The notes under the pieces are model-generated. The model ran no database searches and was not told the DNA's origin. It saw nothing but the letters and a program-made list of their open reading frames with translations. The position numbers were made by a program, and so were the translations under genes. From positions 222,006-286,005 of the IMG/VR virus record IMGVR_UViG_3300020195_000009: DNA of 64,000 bases; one strand, written 5' to 3'. Every line of letters starts with the position of its first letter. Position 1 is the stretch's first letter. Of the stretch, positions 17,650-55,550 are shown piece by piece.

Positions 17650-17880
17650 GATACGCTCGAACCTGGTCTTGTAGGGCTCGGGTGGGGGTGGCACAAAGTA
17701 GACGTAACCTCGACGGGGGCCGCCATTCGGCTCTCGTGCGACAGCTCCAGTGTTGTTGAAGGCGCACAAGGTCGAAGCGACCGATGAGGTCTTGGCTTGA
17801 AGAGCGTGTGATATTTCCGTAGCGCTCTTGCCAGGGTTCCCCCGGACGTAGTTCAAGATCCTGTCTTTGAGCATCTCCAT
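17431..17880 (-). CDS. winged-helix protein carrying KTRFERI; tail runs antisense into the ARH gene
   Basis: ILNYVRGNPGKSATEIS..GYVYF wHTH-like pattern; ATG abuts the tRNA 3' end. Confidence 0.55.
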   Translation of the reverse strand: MEMLKDRILNYVRGNPGKSATEISHALQAKTSSVASTLCAFNNTGAVAREPNGGPRRGYVYFVPPPPEPYKTRFERILAEPDGAASRAASDLQLKPVEVVEVLQTLPPSDGDSIQPVVGSRKRPRNGGRRVSVSASPNRGLNRLLKGLG

Positions 17881-17957
17881 GGTGGTCCCGACGGGATTTG
17901 AACCCGCACCCCGCGAATTTAGAATTCGCTGCTTCAAACCATTTGAGCTTCAGGACC
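17880..17957 (-). tRNA. amber suppressor tRNA (anticodon CUA)
   Basis: Acceptor GGTCCTG/CGGGACC, anticodon arm GCGAA-TT[CTA]AA-TTCGC, T arm GCGGG-TTCAAAT-CCCGT, ends ACCA; atypical A8 and D arm. Confidence 0.8.
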
Positions 17958-18047
17958 GTGCTGCCTAGGGCTGCCTAGGGTCTACACCGCGAAATGTCAC
18001 GGGTGGTGACTAAGGGTTTCCCTTATGGGGTGGTGTACACCAACCCG

Positions 18048-19070
18048 ATGCGTATTGAGATCCCTACCCCCGATGACCTCCACGTCCATCTTAGACAAGA
18101 CTGGATGCTGGAGCACACGGTCGAACAATCCGCCCTCCACTTCGGCCGGGCTCTCGTAATGCCCAACCTCACCCCACCTGTCAAGACGGGGGCGGATGTC
18201 GAGAAGTACCGTTCGGACATCCTCGCTTGGAGACGATTCAGCAAGAAGCCGTTCGAGCCTCTCATGACGATCAAGCTCATGCCGGACACAACGCCGGAAA
18301 TCATCAAAGAGGCCTTTACTGCTGGGGCAGTCGCGGGCAAATTGTATCCCGAAGGCGTCACCACAAACTCTGAGGACGGGATCTCGTTCCAAGGCATCTA
18401 CGAGATGAACGCAGTCTTCAAGGCGATGGAAGACGTAGGAATGGTACTGAGCCTTCACGGCGAGAAGCCCGGTGCCTTTTGCATGGATCGAGAGGAAGCG
18501 TTCCTCAACACTCTCGGGACTATCGCTCATGCTTTCCCAAAGCTCCGCATCGTTATGGAGCACATCACGCACCAGAATACGGTGAAGACAGTGAAGGCGC
18601 TTCCCACCAACGTAGCGGCAACCATCACGGTTCACCATCTGGTCCTCAGCCTCGATGATGTCATCGGAGGCTCGCTTCAACCCCACAATTTCTGCAAGCC
18701 GATCGCAAAAAGCCCCGAGGACCGAGAAGTCCTTCGTGATGCAGCTATCAGTGGCAACCCCAAGTTCTTCTTGGGGACGGACTCGGCACCCCACCTCAAA
18801 GAGAAGAAAGAGTCCGCCTCCGGGTGTTCGGGGGTCTACACGGCACCGATAGCGATGCCCATCCTTGCTCACATCTTCGAGGAAATGGAAGCTCTCGACA
18901 AACTAGCCAACTTCACCTCGAAGTTCGGTGCTGACTTCTACGGGCTGCCCGCTCCGAAAGGGACTCTCGTTCTTGAAAAGGGCGAGCCCTGGGAGATTCC
19001 AAAGAGCTACCACGATGTTGTACCCCTTTGGGCGGGACGTTCAATCGAGTGGAGAGCCGAGCGTCTGTAA
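18048..19070 (+). CDS. pyrC: dihydroorotase (E. coli-type)
   Basis: PDDLHVHLR, VMPNL.PP, KLYPEG.TTNS, LHGE, EHIT, FCKPIAK, FLGTDSAPH. Confidence 0.92.
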   Translation: MRIEIPTPDDLHVHLRQDWMLEHTVEQSALHFGRALVMPNLTPPVKTGADVEKYRSDILAWRRFSKKPFEPLMTIKLMPDTTPEIIKEAFTAGAVAGKLYPEGVTTNSEDGISFQGIYEMNAVFKAMEDVGMVLSLHGEKPGAFCMDREEAFLNTLGTIAHAFPKLRIVMEHITHQNTVKTVKALPTNVAATITVHHLVLSLDDVIGGSLQPHNFCKPIAKSPEDREVLRDAAISGNPKFFLGTDSAPHLKEKKESASGCSGVYTAPIAMPILAHIFEEMEALDKLANFTSKFGADFYGLPAPKGTLVLEKGEPWEIPKSYHDVVPLWAGRSIEWRAERL

Positions 19071-19103
19071 ACAGATTCTCCACAGCCTGTGGATAGAACG
19101 GGG

Positions 19104-19176
19104 CGCTCCCGGCAGGACTTGAACCTGCGACGTACGGATTTAGAAACCGATGTTCTGCCGACTGAACTACGGGAGC
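19104..19176 (-). tRNA. amber suppressor tRNA (anticodon CUA)
   Basis: GCTCCCG/CGGGAGC acceptor, GTTC/GAAC D stem, loop TT[CTA]AA at canonical spacing (anticodon stem has two T-T mismatches), T arm GCAGG-TTCAAGT-CCTGC, G73, no encoded CCA. Confidence 0.8.
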
Positions 19177-19182
19177 ACACAT

Positions 19183-19509
19183 TCACGCTAGCGCTAAAGG
19201 TAAATTCTTACACAACCGTTTAGCCGCAGGTTCCAAGGCGATTGCAGTTGTCTCATTGTCCCGATCTGGCTCTTTGAAGACCGAAACTTTCAAGCCTTGA
19301 TCCCCGGCCCTTTCAACGAGGCGGAGAAGAGCCGCCTCGTTGGGGACCGCTAGGATCGCAAGATGATTCGAGGTCTCATACCAATGGAGGTCTGTTTCAC
19401 TGTGCTGGGCGGAAAACTCCCGCCTGGCGTGGGCTGCTTGAACGGCTTGTTGCCCTGCGGGAAGGTCCGACCTCACAACGAGATAGAGCTTTTCCACCGA
19501 AAGCCCCAC
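19183..19509 (-). CDS. peptidyl-tRNA hydrolase type 2-like protein
   Basis: LYLVVRSDL..GQQAVQAAHA..F.EPD..TTAIALEP; start may be GTG at 19497. Confidence 0.7.
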   Translation of the reverse strand: MGLSVEKLYLVVRSDLPAGQQAVQAAHARREFSAQHSETDLHWYETSNHLAILAVPNEAALLRLVERAGDQGLKVSVFKEPDRDNETTAIALEPAAKRLCKNLPLALA

Positions 19510-20033
19510 AGCTCCAAGTTCGCCTTCACTCGCTGGAGAAGCGAAGGGCGCTGACTAGGCTTGGAAGGCTCCTGAACTTCAACCACCTCTTCGATGGGAA
19601 CCTTCGGAGCCGGCCCCCCATCGAGCCAGGACTTGATGGCGGTCTCGGGGAAGTGAACCATCAGGTCCTTGCTGAGGACGTTCCCCAGGGCTCTGTAGAG
19701 AGCCCCAGAGTACATCTTGTTCCAAGGGTGGCACTTGGCCTCGATGGTCTTGTACGGCCTCCCTCGGAGCAACCCAAGGAGCAGGAAGTAGACCCTGGCG
19801 TTCGAGCCCACCCCTCGCTTGTCGACCCAGAGGGCAGCCCTCTGGGTTCCAGTCTCAGGCCGCTTGAAGGCAATCCAAGCCTTCTTGCCCGTCACCTTTC
19901 GGCCGGACACATCCTTCTGGACCGGAGGCCGACCCTCCTTCCACTTGAGAGTTTGAATCTCCAGGCGGAGCTTCTTGCTCTCCTCGATGCGGTCTTTGAT
20001 GAGCTGCTTGATCGTCTGCTTTGCGTTTCTCAT
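19473..20033 (-). CDS. hypothetical protein
   Basis: GGAG RBS before ATG 20033; GLLRGRPYKTIE motif. Confidence 0.55.
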   Translation of the reverse strand: MRNAKQTIKQLIKDRIEESKKLRLEIQTLKWKEGRPPVQKDVSGRKVTGKKAWIAFKRPETGTQRAALWVDKRGVGSNARVYFLLLGLLRGRPYKTIEAKCHPWNKMYSGALYRALGNVLSKDLMVHFPETAIKSWLDGGPAPKVPIEEVVEVQEPSKPSQRPSLLQRVKANLELWGFRWKSSISL

Positions 20034-20384
20034 GACATTCTCCAGTTCTTTCGTTCGGGTTTGACCAGGCACGAAGGAACGGGAGGTGGGCCACGCGGAC
20101 CGCGTAGCTAGAAAAACGGAGGCTGTACCTACCAGTAGCGGGACATGGAAGTGAGAGTAACCCTCGGAGGGGCTGAGGTCAACAGCCGTGGAAGCTCTCT
20201 CGGACCCCCTGCTGGATGACCCGGATCGTGAGGGTATCCCAGCGGAACGCCTTAGCGTCCTGAACCAGGTTACCCATGGCTTCGTCCTCGGTCATGCCCC
20301 CAAGAGTGCCGAGGAAGTTCTCGATAGCGACCGTTCGGACCCCGTCCTGGTTCGCCAGCTCATGAATGCGGTTGAAGGTCAGCA

Positions 20385-20768: not shown

Positions 20769-20781
20769 CGTCGTGCCTCCT

Positions 20782-21354: not shown

Positions 21355-21762
21355 ATGCCTTTCCGCATCGGTTACCTCTATCGCCTCGAAGGTCACACGC
21401 CCGTGGCCGTGTCTTCGTTCGAGGAGTTCATGCGTTGGGAGCTGGAGACTCTCCACGAACAGAAAATCGTACGGAAGGATGTCGTGGGGGGCGTAGAGAT
21501 TTCCACGGTCTTCCTCGGCCGAAACCATCAGTTCCGGGATGGACCCCCTCTTGTGTTTGAGACGATGGTGTTTGGAGGTGCTGGGGATTACCAGGCTCGC
21601 TACTCCACGTGGGAGCAGGCCGAGCAAGGCCACGCTCGGGCTCTTGCTCAGGTACTTGCTCAAACTCAAGCCCTTGTACCCACGCACAAGGCTCCCGATT
21701 CAAACAAGCCACCCGACCCCTCCTTGAAAACCCGTCTGGAGCGAGTTGAGGAAGAGGACTAA
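21355..21762 (+). CDS. phage hypothetical protein ending in KTRLERV
   Basis: ISTVFLG..FETMVFGG..RYSTW..A..GH family-like motif. Confidence 0.65.
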   Translation: MPFRIGYLYRLEGHTPVAVSSFEEFMRWELETLHEQKIVRKDVVGGVEISTVFLGRNHQFRDGPPLVFETMVFGGAGDYQARYSTWEQAEQGHARALAQVLAQTQALVPTHKAPDSNKPPDPSLKTRLERVEEED

Positions 21763-21952
21763 CCCCTTCCAGCATCGAGCTTCACCATGGGTGCCGGCTC
21801 TGGCGGCATCGGTCCCGTCTTCACAGCGGGGCGGAAAAGGGACCAGATGATCCCCCCAAGGCAGACGGTGAACAGCACTGCCCCGAAGACTTTGATGAGG
21901 GTTGCAGGTGTCTTTGTCATACCCTCAGACCTTCCATAAGAAAGACACCGGG

Positions 21953-22459
21953 ATGATTACCTACCTCAAAGGCGATGCGACCTGCCCTCAAGCGAAGGGG
22001 ACCAAGCTGATTATACACATTTCAAACACGTTGGGCGGTTGGGGCAAAGGCTTCGTTCTAGCGATTTCCAAGCGTTGGAAGGCTCCTGAGGCTATGTACC
22101 GCCAGTGGTACCACCAACGAGATCCGATTCAAAACACCGAGCCCGGTGCGATCGTAATGACTTCCGGGCGTTTCGCTCTCGGGGAGACCCAGCTCGTAAT
22201 GGTCCAGTCAGGCTTGGCGGTCGTCAACATGATCGCCCAAGAGGGCATGCGAACTGGAAGCAAAGGACCGCCCATCCGGTACGAAGCTCTCAAGACGTGC
22301 CTTGGACTGGTCAACGGATATGCTAATTCTTTCAAGGCTTCCATCCATGCACCCAGAATTGGATGTGGACTTGCGGGCGGAAGCTGGGACAAGGTGGAAC
22401 CCATCATCCAGGAAACCCTTTCAGAGCGGGACGTGTACGTTTACGACTTTTCCGGTTGA
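21953..22459 (+). CDS. macro domain (Appr-1-p processing) protein
   Basis: GDAT, GGWGKGFVLAISKRW, VVNMIAQ, HAPRIGCGLAGGSW. Confidence 0.85.
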   Translation: MITYLKGDATCPQAKGTKLIIHISNTLGGWGKGFVLAISKRWKAPEAMYRQWYHQRDPIQNTEPGAIVMTSGRFALGETQLVMVQSGLAVVNMIAQEGMRTGSKGPPIRYEALKTCLGLVNGYANSFKASIHAPRIGCGLAGGSWDKVEPIIQETLSERDVYVYDFSG

Positions 22460-22488: not shown

Positions 22489-23992
22489 ATGAGCAAGGTT
22501 GCCCTCCCCGAGTCGATCAAGTCCCAGATGTCCGCCTGGCGTGAGGGCTTTTGCGACATGCCGTCCGAGTACGTCGCCTTCCACAAGGATCTTGCCGAGA
22601 AGGCGCTTCCCGTCCTCGTTGCGGAGCACGGGCTGACGGTCCACAGCACGACGATGAAGGGTGACGGTTGGATGGACGGCATGAACGTCCTCCAGGTGGT
22701 CATCGAAGAGAAATCGGGCCGCCTGGTGAAGCTCTCGTGGCACGACGGGAACCAGGAGTTCTTCGAGCGTGGCATCGGCTCGTTCCGCTACCGCCCGAAC
22801 CGGAAGGTGTCGTCGTGAAGATCGAAGCAGAGAAGGAGCGCCTCCAAGCGCAGCTCAAGACCGAGACGTACGAAAAGAACGGGGCCCTCTACTGGTCCGT
22901 GGGTTGTACGTGGAGTCCCCCGGAGGACCGCCCGGTCCCGATGGACGTCTTCCGGGATGCGGGCGTCGAGCCTCCGGCCGGTCAACAGGCCGCCGTCACG
23001 GCCCACACGGATGCGAATCTCGCCGCCTATCGTAAGGCCATGGAGAACCATGTCCCGAGCGCTGAGGAGATGTTCGAGATGCGGGCTGCGTTCGGTCCCG
23101 GAGCCACGGTCGTCAACGTCATCACGGGCAAGGAGACGAAGCTGTGAACACCACCAAGCCGGAAGGTCTCAGCGAGGCCGGGTCTAAGGCCTATGACGCC
23201 ATCATGCAGATTATCACGGAGAACGGCGCCACTAACACCGGGGAGTGCAAGGCGTTCTACTCCCCGACGGAGTGGGAGAAACGGGGCGAGTCCTACGGCA
23301 AGGGAGCCGAGCTGATCGTGGTCTACGACGGCGGGGACCACCGGAGGTTCTTCAACATGGACGCTGCGTACCCGACGTACATCAGTCACCTAAAGATGGT
23401 GAACGCTCTCGGGGCGGAAGGCTTGTTCTTCGAGGAATGCACGGGTTGGTATGCCGCCATCTACAAGGGGTAGCGGTGTAGAACCAACGGTGATTGATCT
23501 CGACCGCCTGGAACGACTCATCTCGTCTCGTTCCCGCGAGCCGCTCGTTTGGGAACGCAAGAAGAACGGCCGGGTCTTCCAAGGATCACACCTCGGACAG
23601 ACCCTCATCGCTCTCGATGACACCTACGAGGACAGCCAAGTCGACTGCGAGTTCATCGAGGCCGCCTGCGAGGCGCTCCCGGCTCTCATTGCCGAGGTCC
23701 GCAACCTCCGAAAGAAGAAGGTATGAGCCAGGTCGACGCTCCGTGGACGGATGACCAGGTGGCCTCCCTCAACGGCTACCAAGCGTGTGATTTCGTTCAC
23801 CCGTTCACCGGGAAGCGAGGCCCCAACGGAGAGGAGACTGTCCTCATCGCCACGAAGACCGGCTGGATCGAGAAGGAAGGCGGTCCGATCGTTCAGGAAT
23901 GGGCTCACGAATTCATGGCTGATTGGGGCTGGAAGAAAATGGTCCCGGAATGGCTTTGGGCCGCCAAAAAGGCTAGCGATGAGACCGCCTGA
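22489..23992 (+). other. run of small hypothetical genes (22489-22818, 22815-23147, 23144-23473, 23490-23726, 23723-23992)
   Basis: Overlapping start/stop codons downstream of class I and class II motifs. Confidence 0.55.
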
Positions 23993-24467: not shown

Positions 24468-24781
24468 GCATTCCTTGGGCCATGGCGATCGGAGTTGGAA
24501 GCACTCTTGTCTTCATCCTCCTGTGCCTCGTGACCTTTAATTGGTGGTTCAACCGCCAACGGGAACAAGCACGTGTTGAGCCTAGGGTACCGGAACCTGA
24601 GGACACACTCACCCCTGAAGCCGAGGCCTTTCACAACGCACCAAGCGGAGCAAACCCCGCTGCCCGCCTTACCACGGTCAAAACCAAGAAGGTAAAGAAG
24701 AAGGCCAAGGCCGCCAAGCCAAGACGGCCCCCGAAGACCCGCAAGACCCGGTTCGACCGAATAGGTGAGGAGGACGATTAA
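24464..24781 (+). CDS. single-TM protein ending in KTRFDRIGEEDD
   Basis: Hydrophobic N-terminal helix, basic tail. Confidence 0.6.
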   Translation: MSIPWAMAIGVGSTLVFILLCLVTFNWWFNRQREQARVEPRVPEPEDTLTPEAEAFHNAPSGANPAARLTTVKTKKVKKKAKAAKPRRPPKTRKTRFDRIGEEDD

Positions 24782-25524
24782 CAGGGCTCGATGGTGAACG
24801 TCGGGTCAAAGTCCCTGTTGGGCTCTCCTGGCAACCGGCTGTTGACGTAGCCGAAGGGGTTGCAGACCACCCGCGTCTTGCCGACCACGTAGTCGTGGCT
24901 CGTATGTGTATGCCCGTGGATCCAGAGCTTCGCTTCCCCGTGTTCCACGATGTCCCCAACGTTGTGGACGAAGTAGCCGTTAATGGGTGATCGCTTGAAC
25001 CGAGGGGCGATGCTGTTGAGGTGCGGCACCATATGGGTGATGACCACGTCCCCTGGTTGAACCGTCTCACGAAGGAACTTGGCGGAAGCCTTCGCTCGTT
25101 CATGAACCCACTGAAGGCCGCCTTCGATATACTCGAAGTCCCCCATCTCAAAGTCGGTCAGAAGGCCAACCGGATGCTCATACCAGAGGGTGCAACCTAC
25201 GAAGCGTTGCCCTTGAACCTCGCACACACTCTGTTCGAGAATGGTCAAGTTGGAGCAGACCTCTTTGACCTTCTCGGCTTCCTCGAAGGCACCCTCCAAA
25301 GAGCCCCCGTAGGCCTCGTGATTACCTAGAACGTAGAGCACAGGCCGAGGAGCCACCGCAGATGAGAGGAGCGTCACCGCTTGGTAGAGCGTGTTGAAGG
25401 CTCCGATGTCCCCGGCAAGGATGAGGACATCAAACTCACCCTGGGTGACTTCGTTGACGAGGCTCCGCCCCCCATCCTTGTGGAACTCGAAGTGGAGGTC
25501 CGAGACGATCCGAAGTCTTGTCAT
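24778..25524 (-). CDS. calcineurin-like metallophosphoesterase
   Basis: SDLH, AGDI, GNHE, TH, HGHTH. Confidence 0.9.
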   Translation of the reverse strand: MTRLRIVSDLHFEFHKDGGRSLVNEVTQGEFDVLILAGDIGAFNTLYQAVTLLSSAVAPRPVLYVLGNHEAYGGSLEGAFEEAEKVKEVCSNLTILEQSVCEVQGQRFVGCTLWYEHPVGLLTDFEMGDFEYIEGGLQWVHERAKASAKFLRETVQPGDVVITHMVPHLNSIAPRFKRSPINGYFVHNVGDIVEHGEAKLWIHGHTHTSHDYVVGKTRVVCNPFGYVNSRLPGEPNRDFDPTFTIEPC

Positions 25525-25851
25525 TTGGACCTGCGAAGCAACTCCCCCCAGATCGCACGATCCAGAACATGCAGGGAATTAGCGTAAGCGTAACTTAAGA
25601 ACGCTGTCGGGTGCCGCAAGACTTCTCTATGGAAAAGACGTAGAATTTCATCGGTCTCCTCTGCTGTCGCATTGGGTTTCGAGGCGACGGTATCAACCCA
25701 AAGAGGGCGCAAGGAATCCACCTTGGAGATGGCTTGGTTCGCCTTCTTGCGGGCATCCCGCATCTGAGATCCAATGAACCCTCGGAGTGAGGTAAGCTCC
25801 GCACTCGTCAGGTGGGTGAGGTCGGGGACCTCAACGGGCATCGTGAGATGT

Positions 25852-26301
25852 TCAACGGGCACGTCCGGTACGAACACCGCCGGGCTGCATGGTTACAGCT
25901 GCCCACGCATTTTGCGGGGGTCGGGCAGGTCGAGGGGCGTTAGCCGTTGCGTAGTACTGGACGAAGACAACCTGCTGGATGTTGACCTGCTGGAAGTTGA
26001 CCGTCTGGACTTGGATAAAAGGTACCGGAGCCGGCCTCGATACCGAGACACTGAGCTTGTCGACATCGTTCTTGATGGCGCAAGCGAGCTTGAACTTACG
26101 GGTCTTCTCGGGATCGTTGTCCGTCCGATCCGGGTGAAGCTCGAAGGCCAGCTTCTTGAACCCAGCCTTTACCTTGTCTTTGAGCGCTTCGAGCTGACGC
26201 TGTGCATCCTCGAAGGAAGGAGCCCGTTGAATCAAGTGAAAGTCTTGGGGATTTACCCCCATCTCACCGAGGAGCTTCTGAACTTCGGGGTCCACGTTCA
26301 C
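25852..26301 (-). CDS. J-domain-like protein
   Basis: FKKLAFELHPDR (HPD) followed by EKTRKFK. Confidence 0.65.
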   Translation of the reverse strand: MNVDPEVQKLLGEMGVNPQDFHLIQRAPSFEDAQRQLEALKDKVKAGFKKLAFELHPDRTDNDPEKTRKFKLACAIKNDVDKLSVSVSRPAPVPFIQVQTVNFQQVNIQQVVFVQYYATANAPRPARPPQNAWAAVTMQPGGVRTGRAR

Positions 26302-26662
26302 CTACCAAGTTTTGAATAGCCTGACGGACCACCTGAATGTCTGTCTTCTCTAGCAACGGAACTGCGGCTTTACGCACTCTCTCGACCAGGTCCGTGGGGC
26401 CTCCCCCTGACCAAATGATAAAGCGATCCGCCAACCGAGGCATACTCCCTTGGACCCACAAGTAGAGGTCTAGCCCCGTGCCACCCGGCATCATGAGGTC
26501 CGAGATTATCCCATCAAACACGATCGAACGATCCGTCAGAATCTGCTTCGCCTCTTCTACATTTGAAGCCACGGAGGTTATGAAGTCCCCCTTCAGGAAT
26601 CGGACGAGACTCTGACGAACCATCAGGTCGTCATCAACGATCAACAAGTGAAGTTGAGGCAT
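26264..26662 (-). CDS. stand-alone response regulator receiver
   Basis: LIVDDD, IISDLMMPGGTGLDL, SG, EK; ATG 9 nt after class II motif. Confidence 0.85.
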   Translation of the reverse strand: MPQLHLLIVDDDLMVRQSLVRFLKGDFITSVASNVEEAKQILTDRSIVFDGIISDLMMPGGTGLDLYLWVQGSMPRLADRFIIWSGGGPTDLVERVRKAAVPLLEKTDIQVVRQAIQNLVGERGPRSSEAPR

Positions 26663-29724: not shown

Positions 29725-30342
29725 CTATTCTTGAGGATCAACATCACGTTCAAACCTCGTGGGGGCAAGAGGCTTGCCGGTCTCGTCCCATCGGGCTGTC
29801 TCCCCAGAAGGTACCGTTTCCCACATAGTGACTTCGACTGCGTCCGCTGGGAAATGAAACCCTGCGATCGTTCGAGGACCCATGATGCCATCCTCAGCTA
29901 CCCCTGCGGCTCGTTGAATCCTCCGAACCTCATCGGGAGTCGGAGGTCGAATCACGAAGAAGTCCGCTAGGTTGGGGATGATACGGATCTCTCTCGTCAC
30001 CCGAACCATCGGCTCAAACACCTGCTCAGGGAAGTCCCTAGCCATGAAGGTACCGGATTCTTGGCTGATCCCCGTAACAAGCAGACAGTACCCGTTGGAA
30101 TCCTCCAGGACATCGCCCACTTGGAAGATGCGGTTCCCCTGGGCGTCCTGGATCTGCTGGTGGCTGATCGTGCCCCAAGGCGGCCCATCGCCTAGCCCCG
30201 TGAGCCTAGCAAGCGCCACGTGAACAGGGCAATCGGCTTCTACCCGATCGTGGGCACCATTGTCTGACCAGACGCACGAGCAGACTTCTTCGGTCGAATT
30301 CCCAGCAACGGGTGCCGGAGGTTGAGGGTCTTCGGAAGGCAC
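29725..30342 (-). CDS. hypothetical protein with peptidoglycan-binding-like segment, ending PTRFERD
   Basis: IQRAAGVAEDGIMGPRT; GTG 10 nt after class II motif. Confidence 0.55.
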   Translation of the reverse strand: MPSEDPQPPAPVAGNSTEEVCSCVWSDNGAHDRVEADCPVHVALARLTGLGDGPPWGTISHQQIQDAQGNRIFQVGDVLEDSNGYCLLVTGISQESGTFMARDFPEQVFEPMVRVTREIRIIPNLADFFVIRPPTPDEVRRIQRAAGVAEDGIMGPRTIAGFHFPADAVEVTMWETVPSGETARWDETGKPLAPTRFERDVDPQE

Positions 30343-31096: not shown

Positions 31097-33059
31097 ATGA
31101 CCTACGACGAGATGGCTGTGGAGATTCTGATGGGCCCTGGCTTGGTCAAGACCAAGCAGTCGAAGCTCTCGAAGCTTGCCAAGCAGGCGGCGGCTCGTCT
31201 GGAAAACCGTGTCGAGTGTCCCGAATGTGGACACGAGGGCCCGCACGAGGACAACGGGTGTTCGGGTTCGCAGAAGTCTTACCTCTGCTCCGGCTGCGGT
31301 TGCTGCTTCGATGCGGTGGCGTCGTGAAGGGGTTGGCGAATTTCAGCCGAACGCAGGAGGCCCTCAAAACCTACGACACCGACAAGTCTCGTCGGGACGC
31401 CGTTTGGGGCGCAACCGACACGAACGAGGCTGTCTATGCAGCCCAGGCCGAAGACAAGAAGGCGGCTGACAAGGTTCGTGAGGCTTTCGCCGAGGACACC
31501 AAGAACATCAACAGCCGCGAACAAGCCTTCCTCGTCAACCCAGACGATCCCTGGCTTCGCGGGCTGGTCACCAAGTACGGAGACGAATCATGAGTATTGT
31601 GTACTTTCAAACCGATCACGACGATCGCTGTCACGAGCTAAACGGGGAAACCCCGGCTCGTCTCAAAGACAAGACCCTCATGGGTCTTCTTCAAGACATG
31701 CCTGCCACCGGGGACACCCTGGAGGTTTACCTCGGGACCGACTGGGTGTCCGGTTGGATCCGTGGGGAACCCAACACCTACAAGTTCGAGATCGAATGCG
31801 TGTCGTTCGAGGACGAACGAACCGTCCACGGCGCCATCCACGATGGGCTCATCAAGTACTACAGTGCTCGAAGCAGCCCCCTTCCGTGGCACAAGATCAT
31901 CCCGCCTTCCAAGCAGTGCAACAACCTCCCGGACGAGGTCTACGTGGTCATCGCCAGGGAGGACCGCCAGCCGGACGGCTCCCAGGGTCGGTACACGCTC
32001 GCAACCCGAGCCTTCTTCAAGACTGAAGAGAAAGCCAAAGACTACGCCGTGGGGATCAGCTCCTCTCGGGAACCCCTGGTCATTCCAGGCCGTTTCAATC
32101 AAATGCGAAAGTCTGGTTGATTCCAACAACCCCTCAAGTGTTCTTCTACTATGAACGCCGACCTCATCTTCGTCCTCGCTGTTTCCTTCACGAACGGCAC
32201 GGTCCTGACCGCCAACAACGTTACCGCTGGTAACGGAATGGTGATCGACTGGCGCAACGTGAAGTCCGGTGAGACTGTCGTGTCTGAGGGTGATGCCTAC
32301 GACATGGCTGTCACCTTCGTTGGGCTCGTCGGGTGGGGTGCGGCGGCCATGGCTCTCGATGAGAAGGAGGCCGCATGAACCGCACCGAAGCCTACCAGAA
32401 GGACCGTAAGGGGGACTTCTACGTTGACGACTGCGAGGTCACCGGAGGCCATGGCGTCTTCGGGTCGGAGACCGGCTTCTGTTACGGGTCGTTCTCCGAC
32501 GCCTCCGACGCCTATAGGCTCTGCAACGACCTCATGGACGGAAAGGCCAGGATTCAGTGAGCCACGGGGAGGTCCGCCACCACGGCTTGAAGGAAGAACC
32601 GGACGGCTCCGCTCAGACCATCACCGAGACTTGGTGCAACCATTGCCGGAAGTGGATCCCTACCAATGGGGTTCTCGGCCCTCTCACTTTCATGGCGAAG
32701 CACCGAGACGGAGACTGTCAGCAGTCATGAGCCTTACCGAGCAAGAGATCCAAGACAGCATCCTCCGGTCCCAACGGGACGTCGCCCTTCTCCTCAAAGA
32801 AGCCAAAGCCAAGCTCACTTACGTGGAGAAGCTCGTCTCTGAGGGTCAGTGTGTTCTTCTTCGGTCCGATATTCCGATCGCTGAGCTAACGGCCATCCTT
32901 TGCAAATTTGACGCGATCGAAACCTGTCGGGAGGTCCTCCGCAAAGTCAAATCGGAGCGAAGCCGCAGGCAAGCTAAAGCCAGGGAGGGTGGTCGATGTA
33001 GGTTCAACCGCATCTCTCGGGGCAAAGTCCTGAAGGAAGAAAATTCAAAGTCTGGTTGA
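31097..33059 (+). other. small hypothetical genes (31097-31327 zinc ribbon, 31324-31593, 31590-32120, 32151-32378, 32375-32560, 32727-33059)
   Basis: Coupled ORFs downstream of class I promoters. Confidence 0.55.
32115..32150 (+). promoter_or_regulatory. class I promoter, leaderless; supplies upstream stop
   Basis: GGTTGATTC-N14-GTGTT-N8-ATG(32151). Confidence 0.8.
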
Positions 33060-37634: not shown

Positions 37635-38172
37635 CCTCGGCTCATATCACCGGACGGGTGACCCCTCAAAGCAGAAACGACACGGCGCCTCTACTTTTGC
37701 AGGTCGAGTGAGTTAGATCCGGTCAAACCGTGTAGATCGCTTAGGCTTTGGAGCGGACCTAAGAATTTGGACGAGCCCCTCCGCCCAGTCCCGGCACTTC
37801 GAGCAAAGGGGGATGGGGAGCCCTTTGCCTGTCGGATCCTCAAACGAACACGCTGGGTCCGCTGGGCTGGAGCACTCGTTACACTTCACCATCAGGAACT
37901 CTTCGCCGGGTACTTCTCACGTAGGTAGACTTCGAGCCCCTGTTTGAGAAGATGTTCTTCACCCCAGTTGATGCCGAAGGACTCCTCAAACTCCGCGTCG
38001 GGGAACTCCAGCTTGGCTCGATCCTTCAAAGGGTTGAGCCAACCGCCCTTGTAGAAGCGACCTTGGCCTACAATACACCAGCCGATGGTCTTGCCGTTGT
38101 ACTGATGACCATCGCTGATTGCGTGGCAGGTGAACTTCGTCGCCATGCCCTAAGCGTACACCGGAGGTAAAG

Positions 38173-38776: not shown

Positions 38777-39124
38777 TTACACGGGCTCGTCTCTGTTAAA
38801 TCTGGTTCGCGTGTGATCCAGGCACTTTGCTTCGTACTTGGCGTGAACGCCCTCGTCTTCCGACACGACCCGAATGAGTCGAAGATGAGTCTGGGAGCCG
38901 GCGTAAAACGTCCTCTCACAAACGATGCACTTCCGATCTTCTTGGAGGGTCTCCACGACCCAACCCCCAACCTGGACCTCGCACGCCCCCGCATGGATCC
39001 TACCAAGCGAGATGTAAGCTCTAGCCTCTTCCTCGGTACGAAAGGCCGTCACGAGAGCCCATGGCTCCGTTGAGGTCTCGTAGACGTGCCATCGGCCGTT
39101 ACGCTCTTGAACCGAAAGGGACAC
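38777..39124 (-). CDS. Cys-containing hypothetical protein ending RTRFNRD
   Basis: CIVC; class II-like motif upstream. Confidence 0.5.
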   Translation of the reverse strand: MSLSVQERNGRWHVYETSTEPWALVTAFRTEEEARAYISLGRIHAGACEVQVGGWVVETLQEDRKCIVCERTFYAGSQTHLRLIRVVSEDEGVHAKYEAKCLDHTRTRFNRDEPV

Positions 39125-40330: not shown

Positions 40331-40609
40331 CTAGAGTCGCTCAAACCGGGTCCGAGCCGTATTCAAGATGACGTCCACGGCCTTCTGCACCTCATCAGGG
40401 ATCTGGTACCAGAGGGAATTTCGGAAGTCCCGCCACGAGTGCTCTTCCGACTCGAACCCCTCAAGCGAATTCTCAATGCTTTCACGATACGGCCCTAATA
40501 TCTTGAGAACGAGTTGAATCTTCTCCTCAGGGATCTCACCCAGCAAGCTGTCCCTCACCCACTCATCGAACCCACCCCCGTCGTAACTAGACACAAGGTT
40601 CTCGTTCAA
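40331..40609 (-). CDS. hypothetical protein ending RTRFERL
   Basis: ORF with shared C-terminal motif. Confidence 0.5.
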   Translation of the reverse strand: MNENLVSSYDGGGFDEWVRDSLLGEIPEEKIQLVLKILGPYRESIENSLEGFESEEHSWRDFRNSLWYQIPDEVQKAVDVILNTARTRFERL

Positions 40610-40615
40610 ACCTGG

Positions 40616-40879
40616 TCAAGGGGCCGTCCCTCCAACCCTCAGGCCCCTAGACTCTTCCGGTACAACTTGCCCGGTCTTATGGGGACCGTCAAACATAGGC
40701 TCACGTTTCACCGTTACGAGAGAAGTCTCCTCTCGTAACTCCCTCGCTTGGGCGACCTCAAGGGTCCCCCCTTCCTCAACGAGACCTCCTGGGAATGACC
40801 ACCCCCCGTACCTGCGGTTCCAAACGCAGAGGAGGCGACCGTCTTTGCGTTCGATGTAGGAAACGGCGGACTGCTTCAT
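40616..40879 (-). pseudogene. Nudix hydrolase, C-terminally truncated
   Basis: PGGLVEEGGTLEVAQARELREETSL Nudix box, only 87 aa. Confidence 0.7.
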
Positions 40880-43957: not shown

Positions 43958-44206
43958 TCAACCCTCAGATAGCCGTTCAAACCTAGAACGGCCTTCGTTG
44001 AGGCTCTTGGGGTCGGGGGCCTTCAGGAAGATCCGAAGTGCTTCAACGACTTCCTTGTCGTTCTCGACCAGCCGACCCCTTACGTAGATGTCCCCGTTGG
44101 GTTTGAACCGGAGAACCTCTCCGCTCTTCACGGAGAAGACCATCTCCCCCTCTTCGAGAGAGCCGAGGGTGATGGGCATGTCTTCGAGAGGGCCGAGAGA
44201 ACTCAC
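43958..44206 (-). CDS. hypothetical protein ending RSRFERL
   Basis: EVLRF.PNGDIYV.G; shared motif. Confidence 0.55.
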   Translation of the reverse strand: MSSLGPLEDMPITLGSLEEGEMVFSVKSGEVLRFKPNGDIYVRGRLVENDKEVVEALRIFLKAPDPKSLNEGRSRFERLSEG

Positions 44207-45224: not shown

Positions 45225-45244
45225 CGCCCGGTGTCTTACACCAA

Positions 45245-45873
45245 GTGACCGATCTTCTCCTAGGGGGCCTGTCGACCGACAAGCCGGGGGAATGGTTCAA
45301 GGTTGGAGCGAAGGTCCTCAGCCTTCTAAACTCTTGGGTCATCGTTCAAATCGATGCTGACTCGTTCCTCGCTGTTATAGAGGGTGTGGATGAATGGACC
45401 CGCAAGCCGTTCGAGCCCATTCGGTTCCAAACGCACGAGCTGTTCTGGTTCACTCCTGTGCCAGACCGCTTTAATCGTGAGATTTCGATTGAAGGCAAGT
45501 AGCCTTCGGTGTCTTAAGGGGTATGGCCGACTGGCACCACGTCTCCCTCATCTGGCGGGGGCGGCCACCGGAAACTTCTCGTATCCAGGAGCTAAACGAA
45601 CTCCTCCATGAGCTAGACTACGATTGCCCCCAGCTCACACAGAAGGGGCTCGACACCGCTCGATGGCGGAGCCCTCTTCTCACTTTATTGGAATTTCTGG
45701 ACTTTCTCGACAACATGGGGCACGCCTGCCAAGGCCGACTCACCCTCAGTTACGAGGATGATGACGACTGGCAGACCCACCAACGTGCATCCTGGACCGA
45801 GTCAACTACCAGAGTTCACGAGAAGTTTGCTCACCTCTTGAAGCCCGTCCCTACAAGGTTCGAGCGTATCTAG
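45245..45873 (+). other. two class II-driven small genes (45245-45502, 45523-45873) ending DRFNRE.. and PTRFERI
   Basis: GTGTC-N9-start codon before each. Confidence 0.55.
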
Positions 45874-46090: not shown

Positions 46091-46126
46091 AGTTGAATCT
46101 CAGACCCTCTTCCGTGTTCTTCAACC
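46091..46126 (+). promoter_or_regulatory. class I promoter, leaderless
   Basis: AGTTGAATC-N14-GTGTT-N8-ATG(46127). Confidence 0.8.
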
Positions 46127-48551: not shown

Positions 48552-48588
48552 GGTTGAATTCCTGACCCCTCTCCCGTGTTCTAGCCTC
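48552..48588 (+). promoter_or_regulatory. class I promoter, leaderless; supplies upstream stop
   Basis: GGTTGAATT-N15-GTGTT-N8-ATG(48589). Confidence 0.75.
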
Positions 48589-48879
48589 ATGCTCGTTCAC
48601 CTCTCCAAAAAGAAGTCTGTCGAAGTCGCCTCCTTCGCAGCCGCCAGCGCGGAAGTCCGAGCCTATTGGAACGATCGTTCCTCGACCACGTTTTACCGAG
48701 ACCCCAAGGCGGGCATCATCGAGGACAGCGGTAAGCCCGTCGCTCACGTGTCCTACAATGGCCGCGTGTGGGAAGGTACTTCCCGCTTCACTCTCGGTAA
48801 CACCGAGATTCAGCTCTGACTCCCAGCTCTCTAAACCCCAAGACCGACAACCATGATCAAGCCCAACAAGACCTAACCC

Positions 48880-52102: not shown

Positions 52103-54096
52103 TCTCTAAGAGCGAGCCCCATGAACGAGTTGGACGAACTACCGAGTCTCCGAATCCTTGCGGTGCAGGTCAAGAAGCATTTTGAGGGGGTGAAGGTGGC
52201 CCGTTCGCTCCCCGACCGCTCCAGCTCGTCCTGGAGAACCTCCCCGTAGACTTCGAGAGCCCTCCGAGCGGCTAGGTCCTTGGCTCTTTTGAGTTTGGCT
52301 TCTGTCACCGAGGACACCTGTTCCAATGGTGGGCTTTGCAGCGCTTGCACCAGGGAGACGGTGGACGTGTCGCCTGGGTTGGGTAGTAGTCCGCGTCGGA
52401 TCATCTCCCACTCAAAAATGTGATACCGAGCTGAGCCCTTTCCGCCCTTCGCAGCGGCCTTCTCGTACGAATCCAAAATCTGCGAATCCGAAGCATGGGC
52501 CGCCCATGTCTTCAGATTCGTTTGACGCGTCGTCACGTGAACGTGCTCCAGCTCTCCAGCGTCTCGTCCCATCTCCAGCCAAGCTTCCCCAGCTCCCCCT
52601 TGTGTGCCTCAGAGAGGTCTTCCGGTCGAGGACCTGTCGCATGAAGTACGTCATGCTGAGCATCGCAGTTCCACGTCACCCCGTCAGGCTTGTACCCGTT
52701 CAAGATAGTGAGCCCTTGGGCTATGTCGTGCTGACTTGCCATCTTGCGCCCCATAGCCAAAAATGAGAGGTTTCCAACCAAACCCACCCCCTCGCTGACA
52801 CCGAGAGTCTAAAGTGACTCACCAAATGAGATCGGAGAGCCAAAAATGAGGGGTTTCCGAGAGCCCTACCTCTTCTTACTCTTTTTCTTCAAAGAGATAC
52901 CGCCCTCTAAGACCCCAGAGCCAAAAATGAGAGGTTTCCGAGCAGGTTCGGCCTCCGCTCGCCTACGACGGACCTCACGGATGAGAGCCAGGACCAGACG
53001 GCCGTTGAGTCGGAGCCCTTCCTTGGACTCTCGAAGACAAGAGATCGGCTTCTTCTAGGTCCCGTGGGTGAGCATCTCCAGTTCTCACGTGGTAAGTCTT
53101 CGGTACCTTCTCAAGGAAGCTTTCTCCTACCTCACCAGGTGAGAGCTTCCTGGCTTCATTCATCACCCCGGCCACAAGAGGCTGCCATGAACGGCCCTCG
53201 CGAAGGACAAGAAGCCCACCCGACGGGCTCATGAGCGTCACTCTGTACTCTTTTGATCCGAAGGGATGGGTCAGCTCCAAGATTCGACCCACCTCGTCTT
53301 CCCAGACTCTCCGGTCAAACGTGTGCCACGACGGAGCGGCGTAGCCGCTCGTCGAGTGAGCGTCTCGGACCCCAGGATACGTCAAGCGCCAAGGCATGGT
53401 CCCTAGTATTCCCCAGGGTTTCGTCCCGACCAATCCAAGTCCATCGTCTGGTCCGCCAAGACCTCGTACCCGAGCCCGGCCCACGAGTGAAGCGTCTCGT
53501 CCCGCAGCCGAAGTTGCTCAGGTCCAGACCCAAACATAACGATGAGCGGCCAGTCTTTCGTAGGAAGACGCCGGACCTTATCGAAGCGGTCCAGACCCGG
53601 AGGGTCTTCTTGCCCTTCCCGAAGCTGTACATGAATCGTCGGGAAGCCCATGCCAGGGAGTACACCGGGGATTACCCCCTTCCCCTCAAAAATGAGCCGG
53701 GCTATGAAATTTAGGTCCGGGCAGGGACAGGGGGTTTAGCTCCTGGGCTCCAAAAATTGACCGGCACCCAAAATTTAAGGTCGGGGCGCTCGGAATCCTC
53801 TCATTTCTTAGGGGTTACCCGTCAAACGGGAGCCTCGCGGGGGTAAGGCTAGGCGCAAGAGCCCTCGTCAGGGGCGTTTGGTCGGAATCCTCTCATTTCT
53901 AGGGCTCGTCAGGTCATTCGTCGGGTGTTACGTCCTATTACCCCTCGGCCGGACCACATGTCCGTGTTAATTCGATACGCCCTTTTTGCCGATTTCCCAT
54001 AGTCAAGGGGAATAATCGAGCGGTTTTTATTTTTACAGGAAATATGTATGCCACCTGACACCCCCTGGTCCTGAGGGGTTTTTGAGGAATCGTGCC

Positions 54097-54132: not shown

Positions 54133-54969
54133 ATGGACCGTGACCTCTCAGGTGCATCGAATGACGCAGAACTCATGCAGCTCTGGTTACAAGGGAGACC
54201 TGAGAGCACCATGAGAGTGTACGAGCCTGTAGCTCAGGCCTTCATGGCCGCTCTCCCCCAAGGCTTGCGAGGGGCAACCGTCAAGGACGTGCTCACCTAC
54301 ATTCAAACACACGTGAAGGGTGAGCCTGCTACCAGGGCTAGGTTGGTGAGCACCATCAAGAGCCTGCTCTCATGGGCCTGGAGGACGGGCTATACAACCG
54401 TCAACGTAGGTAAGGCTATTAGGTGCGTACGGGTGCCCAGTACCCTACACAAGAAGCTGTTAGATGAAGGTCAGATACAAGGGCTATGCCGGGCCGCAAG
54501 CGGCCGTGACCATGCCCTTGTTGTTCTTCTGTACGTGAGCGGTCTTCGTATCAGCGAGGCCTGTGGCCTTCTCGGGTCCGACTTGAGGGGATGTCATGTG
54601 ACGGTCCTTGGTAAGGGCACCAAGACCCGAACCGTCCTGATCCCCCAGGCAGTAGCCGACCTTCTCATGACCCTTACCAAGGGGCACCAGGTTGACCCGA
54701 GTAAGCCGCTCTTCTGTTCCCGGTGGGGGAGGCGCCCCCTGGGCGTCCGGGCCGCTAGGGAGGCTATCTACAAGGCGGCATCAAAGGTCGGCCTGGACGA
54801 CCTGTCGCCTCACTGGCTCCGGCACGCTCATGCGACCCATGCCATGGACCGGGGGGCTCCCCTCCACGTCGTCCAACAGGGCCTTGGTCACGCCTCCGTG
54901 GCAACCACCTCGAAGTACCTCCACGTGAAGCCGAGCGTAGGCGCTTCGCAGTGGCTCGCTCCGGTGTAG
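54133..54969 (+). CDS. XerC/D-like tyrosine recombinase
   Basis: SGLRISE, GKGTKTR, PHWLRH, LGHASVATTSKYLH. Confidence 0.92.
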   Translation: MDRDLSGASNDAELMQLWLQGRPESTMRVYEPVAQAFMAALPQGLRGATVKDVLTYIQTHVKGEPATRARLVSTIKSLLSWAWRTGYTTVNVGKAIRCVRVPSTLHKKLLDEGQIQGLCRAASGRDHALVVLLYVSGLRISEACGLLGSDLRGCHVTVLGKGTKTRTVLIPQAVADLLMTLTKGHQVDPSKPLFCSRWGRRPLGVRAAREAIYKAASKVGLDDLSPHWLRHAHATHAMDRGAPLHVVQQGLGHASVATTSKYLHVKPSVGASQWLAPV

Positions 54970-54993
54970 AGTAGGTAGCTCCTTCGGGAGTAA

Positions 54994-55050
54994 GAAGCCC
55001 GCTGTCGTGACCTTGCCCCCCCGAGTGTCCGCAGCGGGCTTCGCTATTTT
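54994..55050 (+). terminator. terminator-like stem (possibly part of a small RNA)
   Basis: GAAGCCCGCTG/CAGCGGGCTTC followed by TATTTT. Confidence 0.55.
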
Positions 55051-55052
55051 CG

Positions 55053-55087
55053 AGTTGAATCCCGAGCGTCTCAGGTGTTCCTGAAAC
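55053..55087 (+). promoter_or_regulatory. class I promoter firing into the 158-nt element
   Basis: AGTTGAATC-N13-GTGTT-N8-GAAGCGGA(55088). Confidence 0.75.
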
Positions 55088-55245
55088 GAAGCGGACGGTA
55101 GGAAAGCTCTCAGAGAGGCTTGACCGGACGGAGTAGGGACGCTTCGGGGAGATCCGTCCGGGACGCCGGATTCTGAACGGATCTCCCCGAAGCCCGGACT
55201 ACTTCGTCTGGGTCTCTCCCGTTTCGGGAGGGGGCCATCCGCTTC
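55088..55245. ncRNA. 158-nt highly paired four-way-junction element, predicted sense and antisense RNAs
   Basis: Terminal IR GAAGCGGA(C/T)GG; perfect 17-bp helix 55141-57/55177-93; 13-bp helix 55124-36/55199-211. Confidence 0.75.
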
Positions 55246-55280
55246 TTCTGGTAAACACAGAGCTTCGCTCGGAATCAACC
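55246..55280 (-). promoter_or_regulatory. class I promoter firing into the same element from the other end
   Basis: GGTTGATTC-N13-GTGTT-N8-GAAGCGGA(55245). Confidence 0.75.
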
Positions 55281-55434
55281 CAGAAATGAGAGAAATTCGA
55301 GCGTAGCGAGCCTGCCCCAAAGGGTGCCCTTCCTGTAGGGCGCGAAGCTCGAAAACCTCTCATTTCCAGGGCCTTTCCCACGTGGTAGCTAGGCAACCGA
55401 AAACGTGACTTTTCGGATCTAGTGCCCAAAAAGG

Positions 55435-55469
55435 GGTTGAATCCGAGCGTCCTCGGGTGTTCCTAGATC
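55435..55469 (+). promoter_or_regulatory. class I promoter, leaderless
   Basis: GGTTGAATC-N13-GTGTT-N8-ATG(55470). Confidence 0.75.
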
Positions 55470-55550
55470 ATGAGCAAGACCCGATTCGACCGGATTCTGG
55501 CCCTCATCGGGCTACCGCCCCAGAACCTCCGAACCAAGGAGGGGCGTAGG
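55470..55550 (+). CDS. 26-aa microprotein MSKTRFDRILAPHRATAPEPPNQGGA
   Basis: ATG at +1 of a class I promoter; carries the shared motif; below the ORF-track cutoff. Confidence 0.55.

Follow-up and report, generated by a model that had tools for sequence, protein, structure and literature searches.

Shared docking peptides organise replication, as with the sliding clamp and SSB, and cargo loading, as in encapsulins. The C-terminal tip of bacterial SSB (D-D-D-I-P-F), an acidic run followed by I-P-F at the very end of a flexible tail, is bound by many genome-maintenance proteins. The sliding-clamp-binding motif (Q-L-[S/D]-L-F or Q-x-x-L-x-x-F) and the PIP box are portable peptides, often C-terminal, found on many unrelated proteins that all dock on one hub, and they are conserved in orthologues while their flanks drift. 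The cargo-loading peptides of encapsulins (G-S-L-x-I-G-S-L) and the capsid targeting sequence of T4 internal proteins, an N-terminal peptide cleaved off at L/I-x-E, address unrelated proteins to one destination in a phage-like system and are read by a shell or a prohead protease. In Hsp70 systems, short peptides commit a client through a dedicated J-domain protein, as with LPPVK of IscU, which is read by HscA with the J-protein HscB, and the KFERQ-like motif, a pentapeptide with a flanking Gln plus basic, acidic and bulky hydrophobic residues, is read by Hsc70 in a lysosomal pathway of eukaryotes. Terminal degrons, common in bacteria (ssrA, MuA, lambda CII), are exposed peptides that act on unrelated proteins, and those read by ClpX, Lon or FtsH are apolar or need the free chain end.

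In an uncultured 286-kb phage (IMG/VR record IMGVR_UViG_3300020195_000009), of which a 64-kb stretch was analysed (the window, positions 222,006 to 286,005), about a dozen unrelated small proteins end in the same short peptide, [K/R/P]-T-R-F-[E/D]-R-[I/L], for which no description was found in the papers searched. Like the SSB tip, it is a conserved peptide on a flexible tail, but in SSB one protein carries the peptide and many partners read it, whereas here many proteins carry it and presumably one partner reads it; the sequences are unrelated, the tails end in I, L, D, E, G, K or V rather than I-P-F, and a free C-terminal Phe is not required. The phage also encodes a different protein (46127-46495) that copies the SSB tip, ending in DDEIPF. 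None of the 14 tails has Gln or the Leu/Phe pattern of the clamp-binding consensus, the carriers are not replication or repair enzymes, and no clamp gene was seen in the window. The motif is not a twin-arginine (Tat) signal (N-terminal S/T-R-R-x-F-L-K followed by a hydrophobic stretch), since it is C-terminal in 11 of 12 copies, its two Arg are not adjacent and no hydrophobic stretch follows. It does not fit ssrA-like or ClpX C-terminal degrons either, as it is polar, is followed by 0 to 17 mostly acidic residues and occurs once at an N-terminus. The core R-F-E-R resembles K-F-E-R and a J-domain gene co-occurs with the tail, but the flanking Gln is missing, the KFERQ pathway does not exist in bacteria, and general DnaK-binding peptides disfavour acidic residues, which abound here; no binding has been shown, and the resemblance is a lead only. 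The encapsulin and T4 consensus sequences are not matched, and no shell or prohead protease gene was seen in the window; as 222 kb of the genome was not read, this comparison does not settle whether a shell or prohead protease reads the tag.

Occurrence of the motif in the window

The copies are as follows, where "stop" marks the stop codon; the last entry is a candidate partner module, discussed below.

17653..17670 (-): KTRFER(I) on a PapI/Ren-like winged-helix protein; the probable gene starts at 17880, and the ORF 17431-17937 has no stop after the motif.
21727..21744 (+): KTRLER-VEEED-stop on gene 21355-21762, whose globular domain is widespread in phages and of unknown function.
24743..24760 (+): KTRFDR-IGEEDD-stop on gene 24464-24781, consisting of an N-terminal membrane helix, a long charged linker and the tail.
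29746..29763 (-): PTRFER-DVDPQE-stop on gene 29725-30342 (or start at 30219).
37719..37736 (-): STRFDRI-stop on a 59-aa Cys-rich (zinc-ribbon-like) protein, gene 37713-37892.
38792..38809 (-): RTRFNR-DEPV-stop on gene 38777-39124 (or start at 39052).
40337..40354 (-): RTRFERL-stop on gene 40331-40609.
40602..40619 (-): LTRFER-EPCV-stop, one base out of frame with the truncated NUDIX gene 40616-40879 and probably the former end of that gene.
43973..43990 (-): RSRFER-LSEG-stop on gene 43958-44206 (or start at 44179), whose core domain matches phrog_16927.
45461..45478 (+): PDRFNR-EISIEGK-stop on gene 45212/45245-45502.
45850..45867 (+): PTRFERI-stop on gene 45523-45873.
55476..55493 (+): MS-KTRFDR-IL at the N-terminus of the 43-aa ORF 55470-55601.
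13043..13060 (+): degenerate copy DSRCDR (F replaced by C), 12 residues from the end of gene 12749-13099.
32994..33011 (+): degenerate copy RCRFNR(I), 15 residues from the end of gene 32727-33059.
25521..26662 (-): operon of a receiver domain (26264-26662), a J-domain protein with HPD (25852-26301) and a 106-aa helical protein (25521-25841); candidate partner module, by inference only.

An earlier note had listed ten such peptides; all ten are in the sequence at the stated places, and the observation is confirmed and proves larger than described. In the six-frame translation, TRF[EDN]R occurs 9 times, against a mean of 0.23 (maximum 3) in 300 dinucleotide shuffles, and 7 copies lie within 8 residues of a stop, against 0.047 expected. 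Terminal enrichment relative to shuffled proteins had been proposed at the outset as the comparison that could overturn the claim; in a set of 133 proteins called with our own rough script, the strict motif lies within about 15-20 residues of the C-terminus 6 times and the relaxed motif 9 times, against 0.001 and 0.033 in 2000 residue shuffles. With relaxed and degenerate copies, 12-14 genes carry the motif. By contrast, about 2.4 Mb of other phage and metagenome DNA holds almost none: among the 79 IMG/VR loci that carry a homologue of 21355-21762, only one (L019) has the tail, and 0.97 Mb of metagenome and genome loci has none.

Three copies require correction. First, the copy at 17653-17670 is not near a stop in this sequence, as the ORF runs on for 73 codons antisense to the ADP-ribosylglycohydrolase gene; its orthologues are 78-87 aa and most stop 1-4 residues after the motif, with ends such as RTRFERVID, PTRFDRIYFA and SRFERILKD. 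Second, the copy at 40602-40619, regarded as an orphan, is probably the out-of-frame end of the truncated NUDIX gene; an independent assembly of the same sample is identical across it, so the break is not an error of the IMG assembly, and a relative's contig diverges exactly at 40589. Third, the copy at 55476-55493 is N-terminal and its ORF sits directly behind a phage promoter-like repeat, with the ATG at the usual distance. Three copies are additions: STRFDRI at 37719-37736, which the note missed, DSRCDR at 13043-13060, which lies outside the range it covered, and RCRFNR at 32994-33011. The note also stated that several of the genes follow class II promoters, but only one promoter-like repeat family was found, and it precedes only two motif genes, starting at 12749 and 55470.

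Conservation and portability

The carriers are unrelated outside the tail: an all-against-all BLASTP comparison finds similarity only in the tails, and the Pfam and PHROG domain hits differ between carriers, which comprise a winged-helix protein, a membrane anchor, a zinc ribbon, a NUDIX remnant and orphans. The codons also differ between copies, since the first Arg uses AGG five times, CGG three times, and CGT, CGC, CGA and AGA, whereas the second uses CGA four times, CGT four times, CGG three times, and AGA. In five orthologous families from related phages (45-65% identity), 40 core codons in 8 orthologue pairs gave 12 identical codons, 22 synonymous changes and 6 mostly conservative amino-acid changes, which indicates purifying selection at the protein level. 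Several genes in the window look decayed, namely the NUDIX gene, the R2K gene and the winged-helix gene that lost its stop, and thus selection in this particular genome may be relaxed. The linkers, often Pro/Lys-rich, vary in length and sequence while the motif stays.

For gene 21355-21762, eight orthologues keep T, R, E and R behind a linker of 0-20 aa, whereas the more distant homologues listed (P0009-P0120) end before it. For gene 29725-30342, orthologues of 47-66% identity keep P[TS]RF[ED]R[DV]xD while the linker diverges. The orthologue of 12749-13099 in the related locus L185 ends YDSRFDRDD. For gene 24464-24781, the orthologue in the relative L182 keeps only the membrane helix, the basic stretch and RTRFDRIGDDD, which fits a protein that acts through the tail as a tether. 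Bacillus-phage homologues of 43958-44206 share the core domain but not the tail. Since more distant homologues of two carriers have the domain without the tail, the tail is an add-on. In addition, seven copies lie in a 12-kb island (about 36.6-48.9 kb) that L182 lacks, and therefore newly acquired accessory genes carry the tag too. AlphaFold models of two unrelated carriers, the winged-helix protein and 21355-21762, place the motif at the start of a short helix with Thr as N-cap.

A proposed docking motif for a common partner

The motif has the hallmarks of a short linear docking motif, a class with 3-10 conserved residues in an otherwise variable, flexible region: a core of 5-7 residues is conserved in orthologues, is portable between unrelated proteins and sits behind variable linkers. 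Its consensus is [K/R/P]-[T/S/D]-R-[F/L]-[E/D/N]-R-[I/L/V/D/E], followed by the chain end or by acidic residues. We consider it somewhat more likely than not that the motif forms a one-to-two-turn amphipathic helix, in which Thr caps the N-terminus, Phe and Ile/Leu make the apolar face and the two Arg flank that face, and that this helix would dock into a groove on one common partner in the cytoplasm of the infected cell. The phage would thereby gather a set of accessory proteins on the same hub, including a membrane tether and a DNA-binding protein. The enrichment, selection at the protein level, portability and the predicted helix rest directly on the data, whereas binding in trans to a single partner is inferred: no partner was found, and neither complex prediction nor a binding experiment was carried out. 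The earlier note's proposal of an undescribed docking or addressing tag is thus partly supported; among its options, hub-protein binding remains the best fit, capsid packaging and compartment import are disfavoured, and a protease adaptor is weakened. The N-terminal copy indicates that a free C-terminus is not needed.

The identity of the partner is a guess. The leading candidate, by co-occurrence only, is the conserved receiver / J-domain / 106-aa operon, which would link tagged proteins to host DnaK. The operon is present near the tail-bearing orthologues where enough flanking sequence was available (L182/L183, L019, and the J-domain gene on the contigs of orthologues P0007 and P0001), and it is absent from 78 loci whose homologue of 21355-21762 has no tail. 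Among the 79 loci, only L019 has the ARH / PTH2 / DprA-like / receiver / J-domain / zf_Tbcl / R2K set. However, this co-occurrence is confounded by relatedness and amounts to one independent lineage beyond the close relatives, and other co-occurring genes or a conserved host protein are equally open as candidates. A bolder possibility, which we regard as unlikely although the evidence permits it, is that a lineage of very large phages runs its own protein-addressing system, in which a portable helical tag gathers a dozen or more accessory proteins, including newly acquired genes, a membrane tether and a small decoy-like peptide, on a phage-encoded hub, with the receiver / J-domain operon as the candidate, that would couple them to the host Hsp70 machine. 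This would be a virus-encoded client-selection code for a chaperone and a general way for phages to plug new genes into an existing control hub.

Alternative explanations

Other readings are less likely, though a degron, a modification site and a packaging signal are not excluded. One may argue that the motif is a degradation tag recognised by a host or phage protease or adaptor, so that a set of accessory proteins is removed together at a given time in infection, since it is near the C-terminus, exposed on a flexible linker and shared by many small accessory proteins. This is unlikely, because known C-terminal degrons need the free chain end or are apolar, which does not agree with the residues that follow the motif or with the N-terminal copy, the polar residues T, R, E and R are the most conserved, and a membrane anchor plus linker plus tail with nothing else conserved makes little sense if the tail only destroys the protein.

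It is also possible, but doubtful, that the motif is a recognition site for a protein-modifying enzyme of the same gene module, either for reversible ADP-ribosylation of one of the two invariant Arg, removed by the ADP-ribosylglycohydrolase at 16723-17649, or for addition of amino acids to the acidic ends by the R2K ATP-grasp ligase. The glycohydrolase gene converges on and abuts the tail end of the winged-helix gene in the window and in related loci L185 and L186, and the contig of P0007 shows the same gene layout. Moreover, R2K and glycohydrolase genes co-occur with the tail, the two were linked before in bacterial operons and predicted to act on proteins (PMC4431377), and two families end in runs of Glu/Asp. 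However, no ADP-ribosyltransferase was seen in the window, the R2K gene here is broken by a frameshift plus loss of about 55 residues while the tails are nevertheless kept, many tails end in I or L without acidic residues, and Phe is as conserved as Arg, which points to a binding surface.

An addressing signal for packaging into the capsid, or for import into a phage-made compartment, seems improbable. Shared terminal peptides do this job in other systems and the phage genome is very large, but the carriers include an integral membrane protein and a small DNA-binding regulator and lie among small accessory genes, not with structural genes; no encapsulin or chimallin-like gene was seen in the 64 kb read. 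Slightly less likely still is an intramolecular capping helix that folds back on its own domain and arose independently or was copied without any shared partner. In its favour, the winged-helix tail is modelled with pLDDT 85-88 and the tail of 21355-21762 with 73-79, not as disordered, and in the winged-helix family the tail is ancient and widespread, also in a Trp form, T-x-W-[E/Q]-[R/H]-[I/L]-L-x-D-D, so there it may pack against its own domain rather than bind in trans. Against it, more than ten unrelated folds would each need a matching groove, linker length varies from 0 to 20 residues within one family, one carrier has no folded cytoplasmic domain to fold back on, and homologous domains elsewhere do without the tail. 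Finally, a signal at the DNA or RNA level (terminator, recombination site or regulatory RNA site) or mere chance is already close to refuted by the freely varying third codon positions and Arg codon families, the excess of synonymous changes and the shuffles, although the copies sit at gene ends and one lies exactly at the mosaic junction at 40589.

Implications

No described case was found of a phage putting one common tag on a large, mixed set of its accessory proteins. If the partner is found, one peptide would give a handle on the function of a dozen orphan genes at once, and it would show how newly acquired genes are wired into a phage's control network. It would also provide a small portable tag for recruiting proteins in bacteria. 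Moreover, the Trp variant on small winged-helix proteins from other metagenomic contigs suggests that the partner, or the principle, is wider than this lineage.

Genomic context of the motif

The source contig, IMGVR_UViG_3300020195_000009, is a 286,005-bp viral contig from a microbial-mat metagenome, of which only the last 64 kb were read here (window position = contig position minus 222,005). Its G+C content is about 58%. A 90-97% identical relative occurs in a sediment metagenome, but no cultured phage is close at the DNA level, since a megablast search with 8 kb against cultured phages gave no match. The window holds large structural-looking genes at its start, a long stretch of small accessory genes, and a tyrosine integrase. 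Gene calls are from our own rough script. The following features bear on the motif or lie among the genes that carry it:

16723-17649 (+), ADP-ribosylglycohydrolase gene
17650-17880 (-), small winged-helix gene, converging with the glycohydrolase gene
21908-22459 (+), gene for a 183-residue protein that matches phrog_335 (annotated "phosphatase", E 5e-27) and contains a GGWGKGF segment reminiscent of macro domains
36600-48900, variable accessory island of about 12 kb
44454-45224, uracil-DNA glycosylase gene
46127-46495 (+), gene for a 122-residue protein with no OB-fold hit that ends in DVGDDEIPF
48850-49468 (+), broken gene of the R2K-family ATP-grasp ligase
54133-54969, tyrosine integrase gene
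52738-52944, 53778-53912, 55337-55379 and 55650-55692, second repeat family (GAGCCAAAAATGAGAGGTTTCC and its inverse)

The 183-residue protein lies close to the glycohydrolase, PTH2 and NUDIX genes, which suggests a nucleotide or ADP-ribose metabolism theme. The end of the 122-residue protein copies the C-terminal tip of bacterial SSB (DDDIPF), so it may be a decoy or competitor for SSB-binding proteins. The second repeat family flanks the integrase gene, and its copies may be recombination or regulator sites.

A phage-specific promoter-like repeat, TTGAWTC-N13/14-GTGTTC, occurs about 20 times in the window, at 11990, 12715, 22456, 32117, 33056, 33985, 34671, 35213, 41693, 46093, 49697, 51990, 54099, 55055 and 55437 on the + strand and at 20815, 10440, 9597 and 6955 on the - strand. 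The ATG of the gene usually follows 7-8 nt later, so many transcripts would be leaderless or nearly so, and the repeat does not look like a sigma-70 -10 box. One copy precedes the gene of the SSB-tip mimic. The earlier note had stated that several motif genes follow class II promoters, but a promoter class as a common feature of the motif genes is rejected, because only two of them have the element.

Occurrence and specificity of the motif

The observation made in the earlier note, a shared C-terminal motif on about ten unrelated small proteins, holds: a six-frame scan finds every peptide listed there, and more. TRF[EDN]R occurs 9 times, against 0.23 expected from 300 dinucleotide-preserving shuffles (maximum 3), and seven copies lie within 8 residues of a stop, against 0.047 expected. 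The note had also proposed that a lack of terminal enrichment relative to a shuffled proteome would speak against the motif. In a proteome from our own rough gene-calling script, residue shuffling gives 0.001 terminal strict copies against 6 observed, and 0.033 relaxed copies against 9 observed. Counting relaxed copies (KTRLER, RSRFER, PDRFNR), one copy that the note had missed and two degenerate ones, 14 sites carry the motif. The three additional sites are:

37719-37736, STRFDRI followed directly by a stop (missed in the note)
13043-13060, degenerate copy DSRCDR
32994-33011, degenerate copy RCRFNR

The motif is specific to this lineage, although it may also be used in an unrelated contig described in the final section. 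The 79 other IMG/VR loci that carry a homologue of one carrier, the product of gene 21355-21762, have a single clear copy, which lies in that homologue in L019, a 512-kb phage contig of 49% G+C. In addition, one short metagenome contig (L014) has a variant, RTRHER, also in the orthologue. A further 0.97 Mb of metagenome and genome loci has none. Gene 44454-45224 was used as a synteny anchor in viral and metagenome collections, but as a uracil-DNA glycosylase gene it returned only unrelated genomes, which served as background. A DNA pattern for K-T-R-F-[E/D]-R-I with the codons of this phage hits only the three window copies plus two chance sites in all of IMG/VR; broader patterns, which would return thousands of chance hits, were not searched. 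A scan of a genome collection found seven loci with tail-less homologues and gave no clue to the host, and a search with the PcfJ-like gene found only the source contig.

Conservation at the protein level

The two Arg positions use both CGN and AGR codons, and the Thr, Phe and Glu/Asp codons also vary. Eight orthologue pairs from five families were compared, and of the 40 core codons 12 are identical, 22 differ synonymously and 6 change the amino acid, mostly T/S, E/D or F/L/H. A DNA hairpin in the motif was considered and rejected, since only codon combinations with GAC-CGN give a 3-bp stem. The carriers share nothing but the tail. They include a small winged-helix protein of the PapI/Ren look-alike kind, a protein with one N-terminal membrane helix, a Cys-rich 59-residue protein, a NUDIX remnant, a domain shared with Bacillus phages, and several orphans.

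Conservation in relatives

Eight orthologues of gene 21355-21762 (55-64% identical) all end in [K/R]-T-R-[L/H]-E-R-x followed by three or four acidic residues, behind a linker of 0 to 20 residues. In contrast, the more distant homologues listed (about 110), including those of cultured Rhizobium and Pseudomonas phages, stop before the tail. Orthologues of gene 29725-30342 at 47-66% identity keep P-[T/S]-R-F-[E/D]-R while the preceding 25 residues diverge, and one orthologue carries 17 more residues after the motif. Contigs of relatives include Logan SRR19905787_20714 and SRR32830375_5194 and IMGVR_UViG_3300028654_000001. The DNA of the contigs of two relatives (P0007 and P0001) was not part of the comparison. 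Syntenic contigs of a 63.5% G+C relative (L182, L183 and L185) keep the tail on the orthologues of five window genes, including the membrane-anchored one, in which only the anchor, a basic stretch and R-T-R-F-D-R-I-G-D-D-D are alike. L019 keeps A-T-R-F-E-R-I-L-R-D-D on the orthologue of 21355-21762. In this contig a 469-residue TnpB/IS605-like ORF at 8551-9960 (-), identified by reading of the sequence without further testing, is inserted in the conserved module.

The winged-helix family is wider. A word-based homologue search with the 77-residue protein found nothing, but an exhaustive search recovered representatives from other metagenomic contigs, which carry either the Phe form or a Trp form, T-x-W-[E/Q]-[R/H]-[I/L]-L-x-[D/E]-[D/E], at the same place. 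tblastn searches of cultured phages with the winged-helix protein and with a Trp-type relative gave no match. A profile search of solved structures with this family gave only generic winged helices, and a protein-atlas search gave PapI/FaeA and Ren look-alikes and nothing about the tail.

Predicted structure of the tail

AlphaFold models of two unrelated carriers put the motif at the start of a short helix. In the winged-helix protein the predicted helix spans residues 73-76, with Thr72 just before it and a pLDDT of 85-88, whereas in the product of 21355-21762 it spans residues 127-134, with Thr126 just before it and a pLDDT of 73-75, behind a coil linker. A fold search with the latter model gave nothing. 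T-x-x-E is the classical helix capping box, which would explain why Thr, Ser or Asp occupies the first position and Glu, Asp or Asn the fourth. On such a helix, we infer, Phe and Ile/Leu form an apolar face flanked by the two Arg.

Irregular copies

Three copies depart from the general pattern. First, the winged-helix ORF has no stop after K-T-R-F-E-R-I and runs 73 codons into the antisense of the glycohydrolase gene. In L185 (10001-11172) and L186, the 80-residue orthologue stops two residues after the motif and overlaps the glycohydrolase gene by 4 nt at their stops; the stop therefore seems to have been lost here. Second, the copy described as an orphan in the earlier note lies one frame off the end of an 87-residue NUDIX fragment. 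An independent assembly of the same sample is identical over this stretch at about 86-fold word depth, and a relative's contig stops matching exactly at 40589, right after the stop codon of the orphan. It is a real gene remnant at a mosaic junction. Third, the copy at 55476 is N-terminal, in a 43-residue ORF that sits directly behind one copy of the promoter-like repeat with its ATG at the usual distance, and it is probably expressed.

Possible function and candidate partners

The pattern is that of a docking motif: it is short, sits on a variable tether, is portable, is selected at the protein level, and is present on genes of the 12-kb island (about 36.6-48.9 kb) that L182 lacks. This island holds seven motif genes, the PcfJ-like gene, the uracil-DNA glycosylase gene and the SSB-tip mimic, and in L182 the orthologue of 36335-36625 lies about 700 nt from the R2K gene, with one gene between them. 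The membrane-anchored carrier argues that the tail is the working part of the protein, and the N-terminal copy and the tolerated extensions argue against a signal that needs the free C-terminus. The interpretation offered in the note, an undescribed docking or addressing tag, is thus supported in part: the enrichment, the portability and the selection at the protein level are shown, whereas binding to a partner is inferred, interaction was not assayed, and no partner was identified.

The only lead to a partner is co-occurrence. Among the 79 viral loci with a homologue of 21355-21762, only L019 has the tail, and only L019 also has, within 10 kb, the set of glycohydrolase, PTH2, a 186-residue protein, a DprA-like protein, the receiver / J-domain / 106-residue operon, a zf_Tbcl protein and the R2K ATP-grasp ligase, but this association is confounded by relatedness. 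Eight co-occurring proteins of the phage are encoded at 16723-17649, 19183-19497, 19473-20033, 23979-24467, 25521-25841, 25852-26301, 26264-26662 and 26734-27045. Within that set, the R2K ligase was considered as the reader of the tails, but its gene is broken in the window: the first residues lie in one frame and the next 33 in another, about 55 residues are missing compared with the 243-residue orthologue read in L182, and only the C-terminal 150 residues form an ORF (49016-49468). This frameshift and loss speak against it. The receiver / J-domain operon is intact in all three lineages and is the most protein-interaction-like candidate, although its choice is a guess. A conserved host protein is just as possible, and the Phe/Trp variants across phages of 49-64% G+C would fit that.

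Alternative explanations

One may argue that the tail is a degron, a modification site, or a packaging or import signal, and none of these is excluded by experiment. A helix that packs in cis is unlikely as the general answer, given more than ten unrelated carriers, but it may hold for the winged-helix family. A DNA- or RNA-level signal, or chance, is effectively excluded.

Wider significance

Shared docking peptides are a known kind of device, but neither the peptide strings nor the concept of shared phage tail motifs was found in the literature searched, and a phage-wide tag on mixed accessory proteins is, as far as we could find, not described. In L188, an unrelated metagenomic phage contig, a DUF5131 protein (8292-9179, + strand) ends in RTAFERVLGGGRLDG and the nearby winged-helix protein (6823-7080, + strand) ends in KTSWQHILDEDDDE, each directly before the stop. 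The tag may thus be used on several proteins outside this lineage too.
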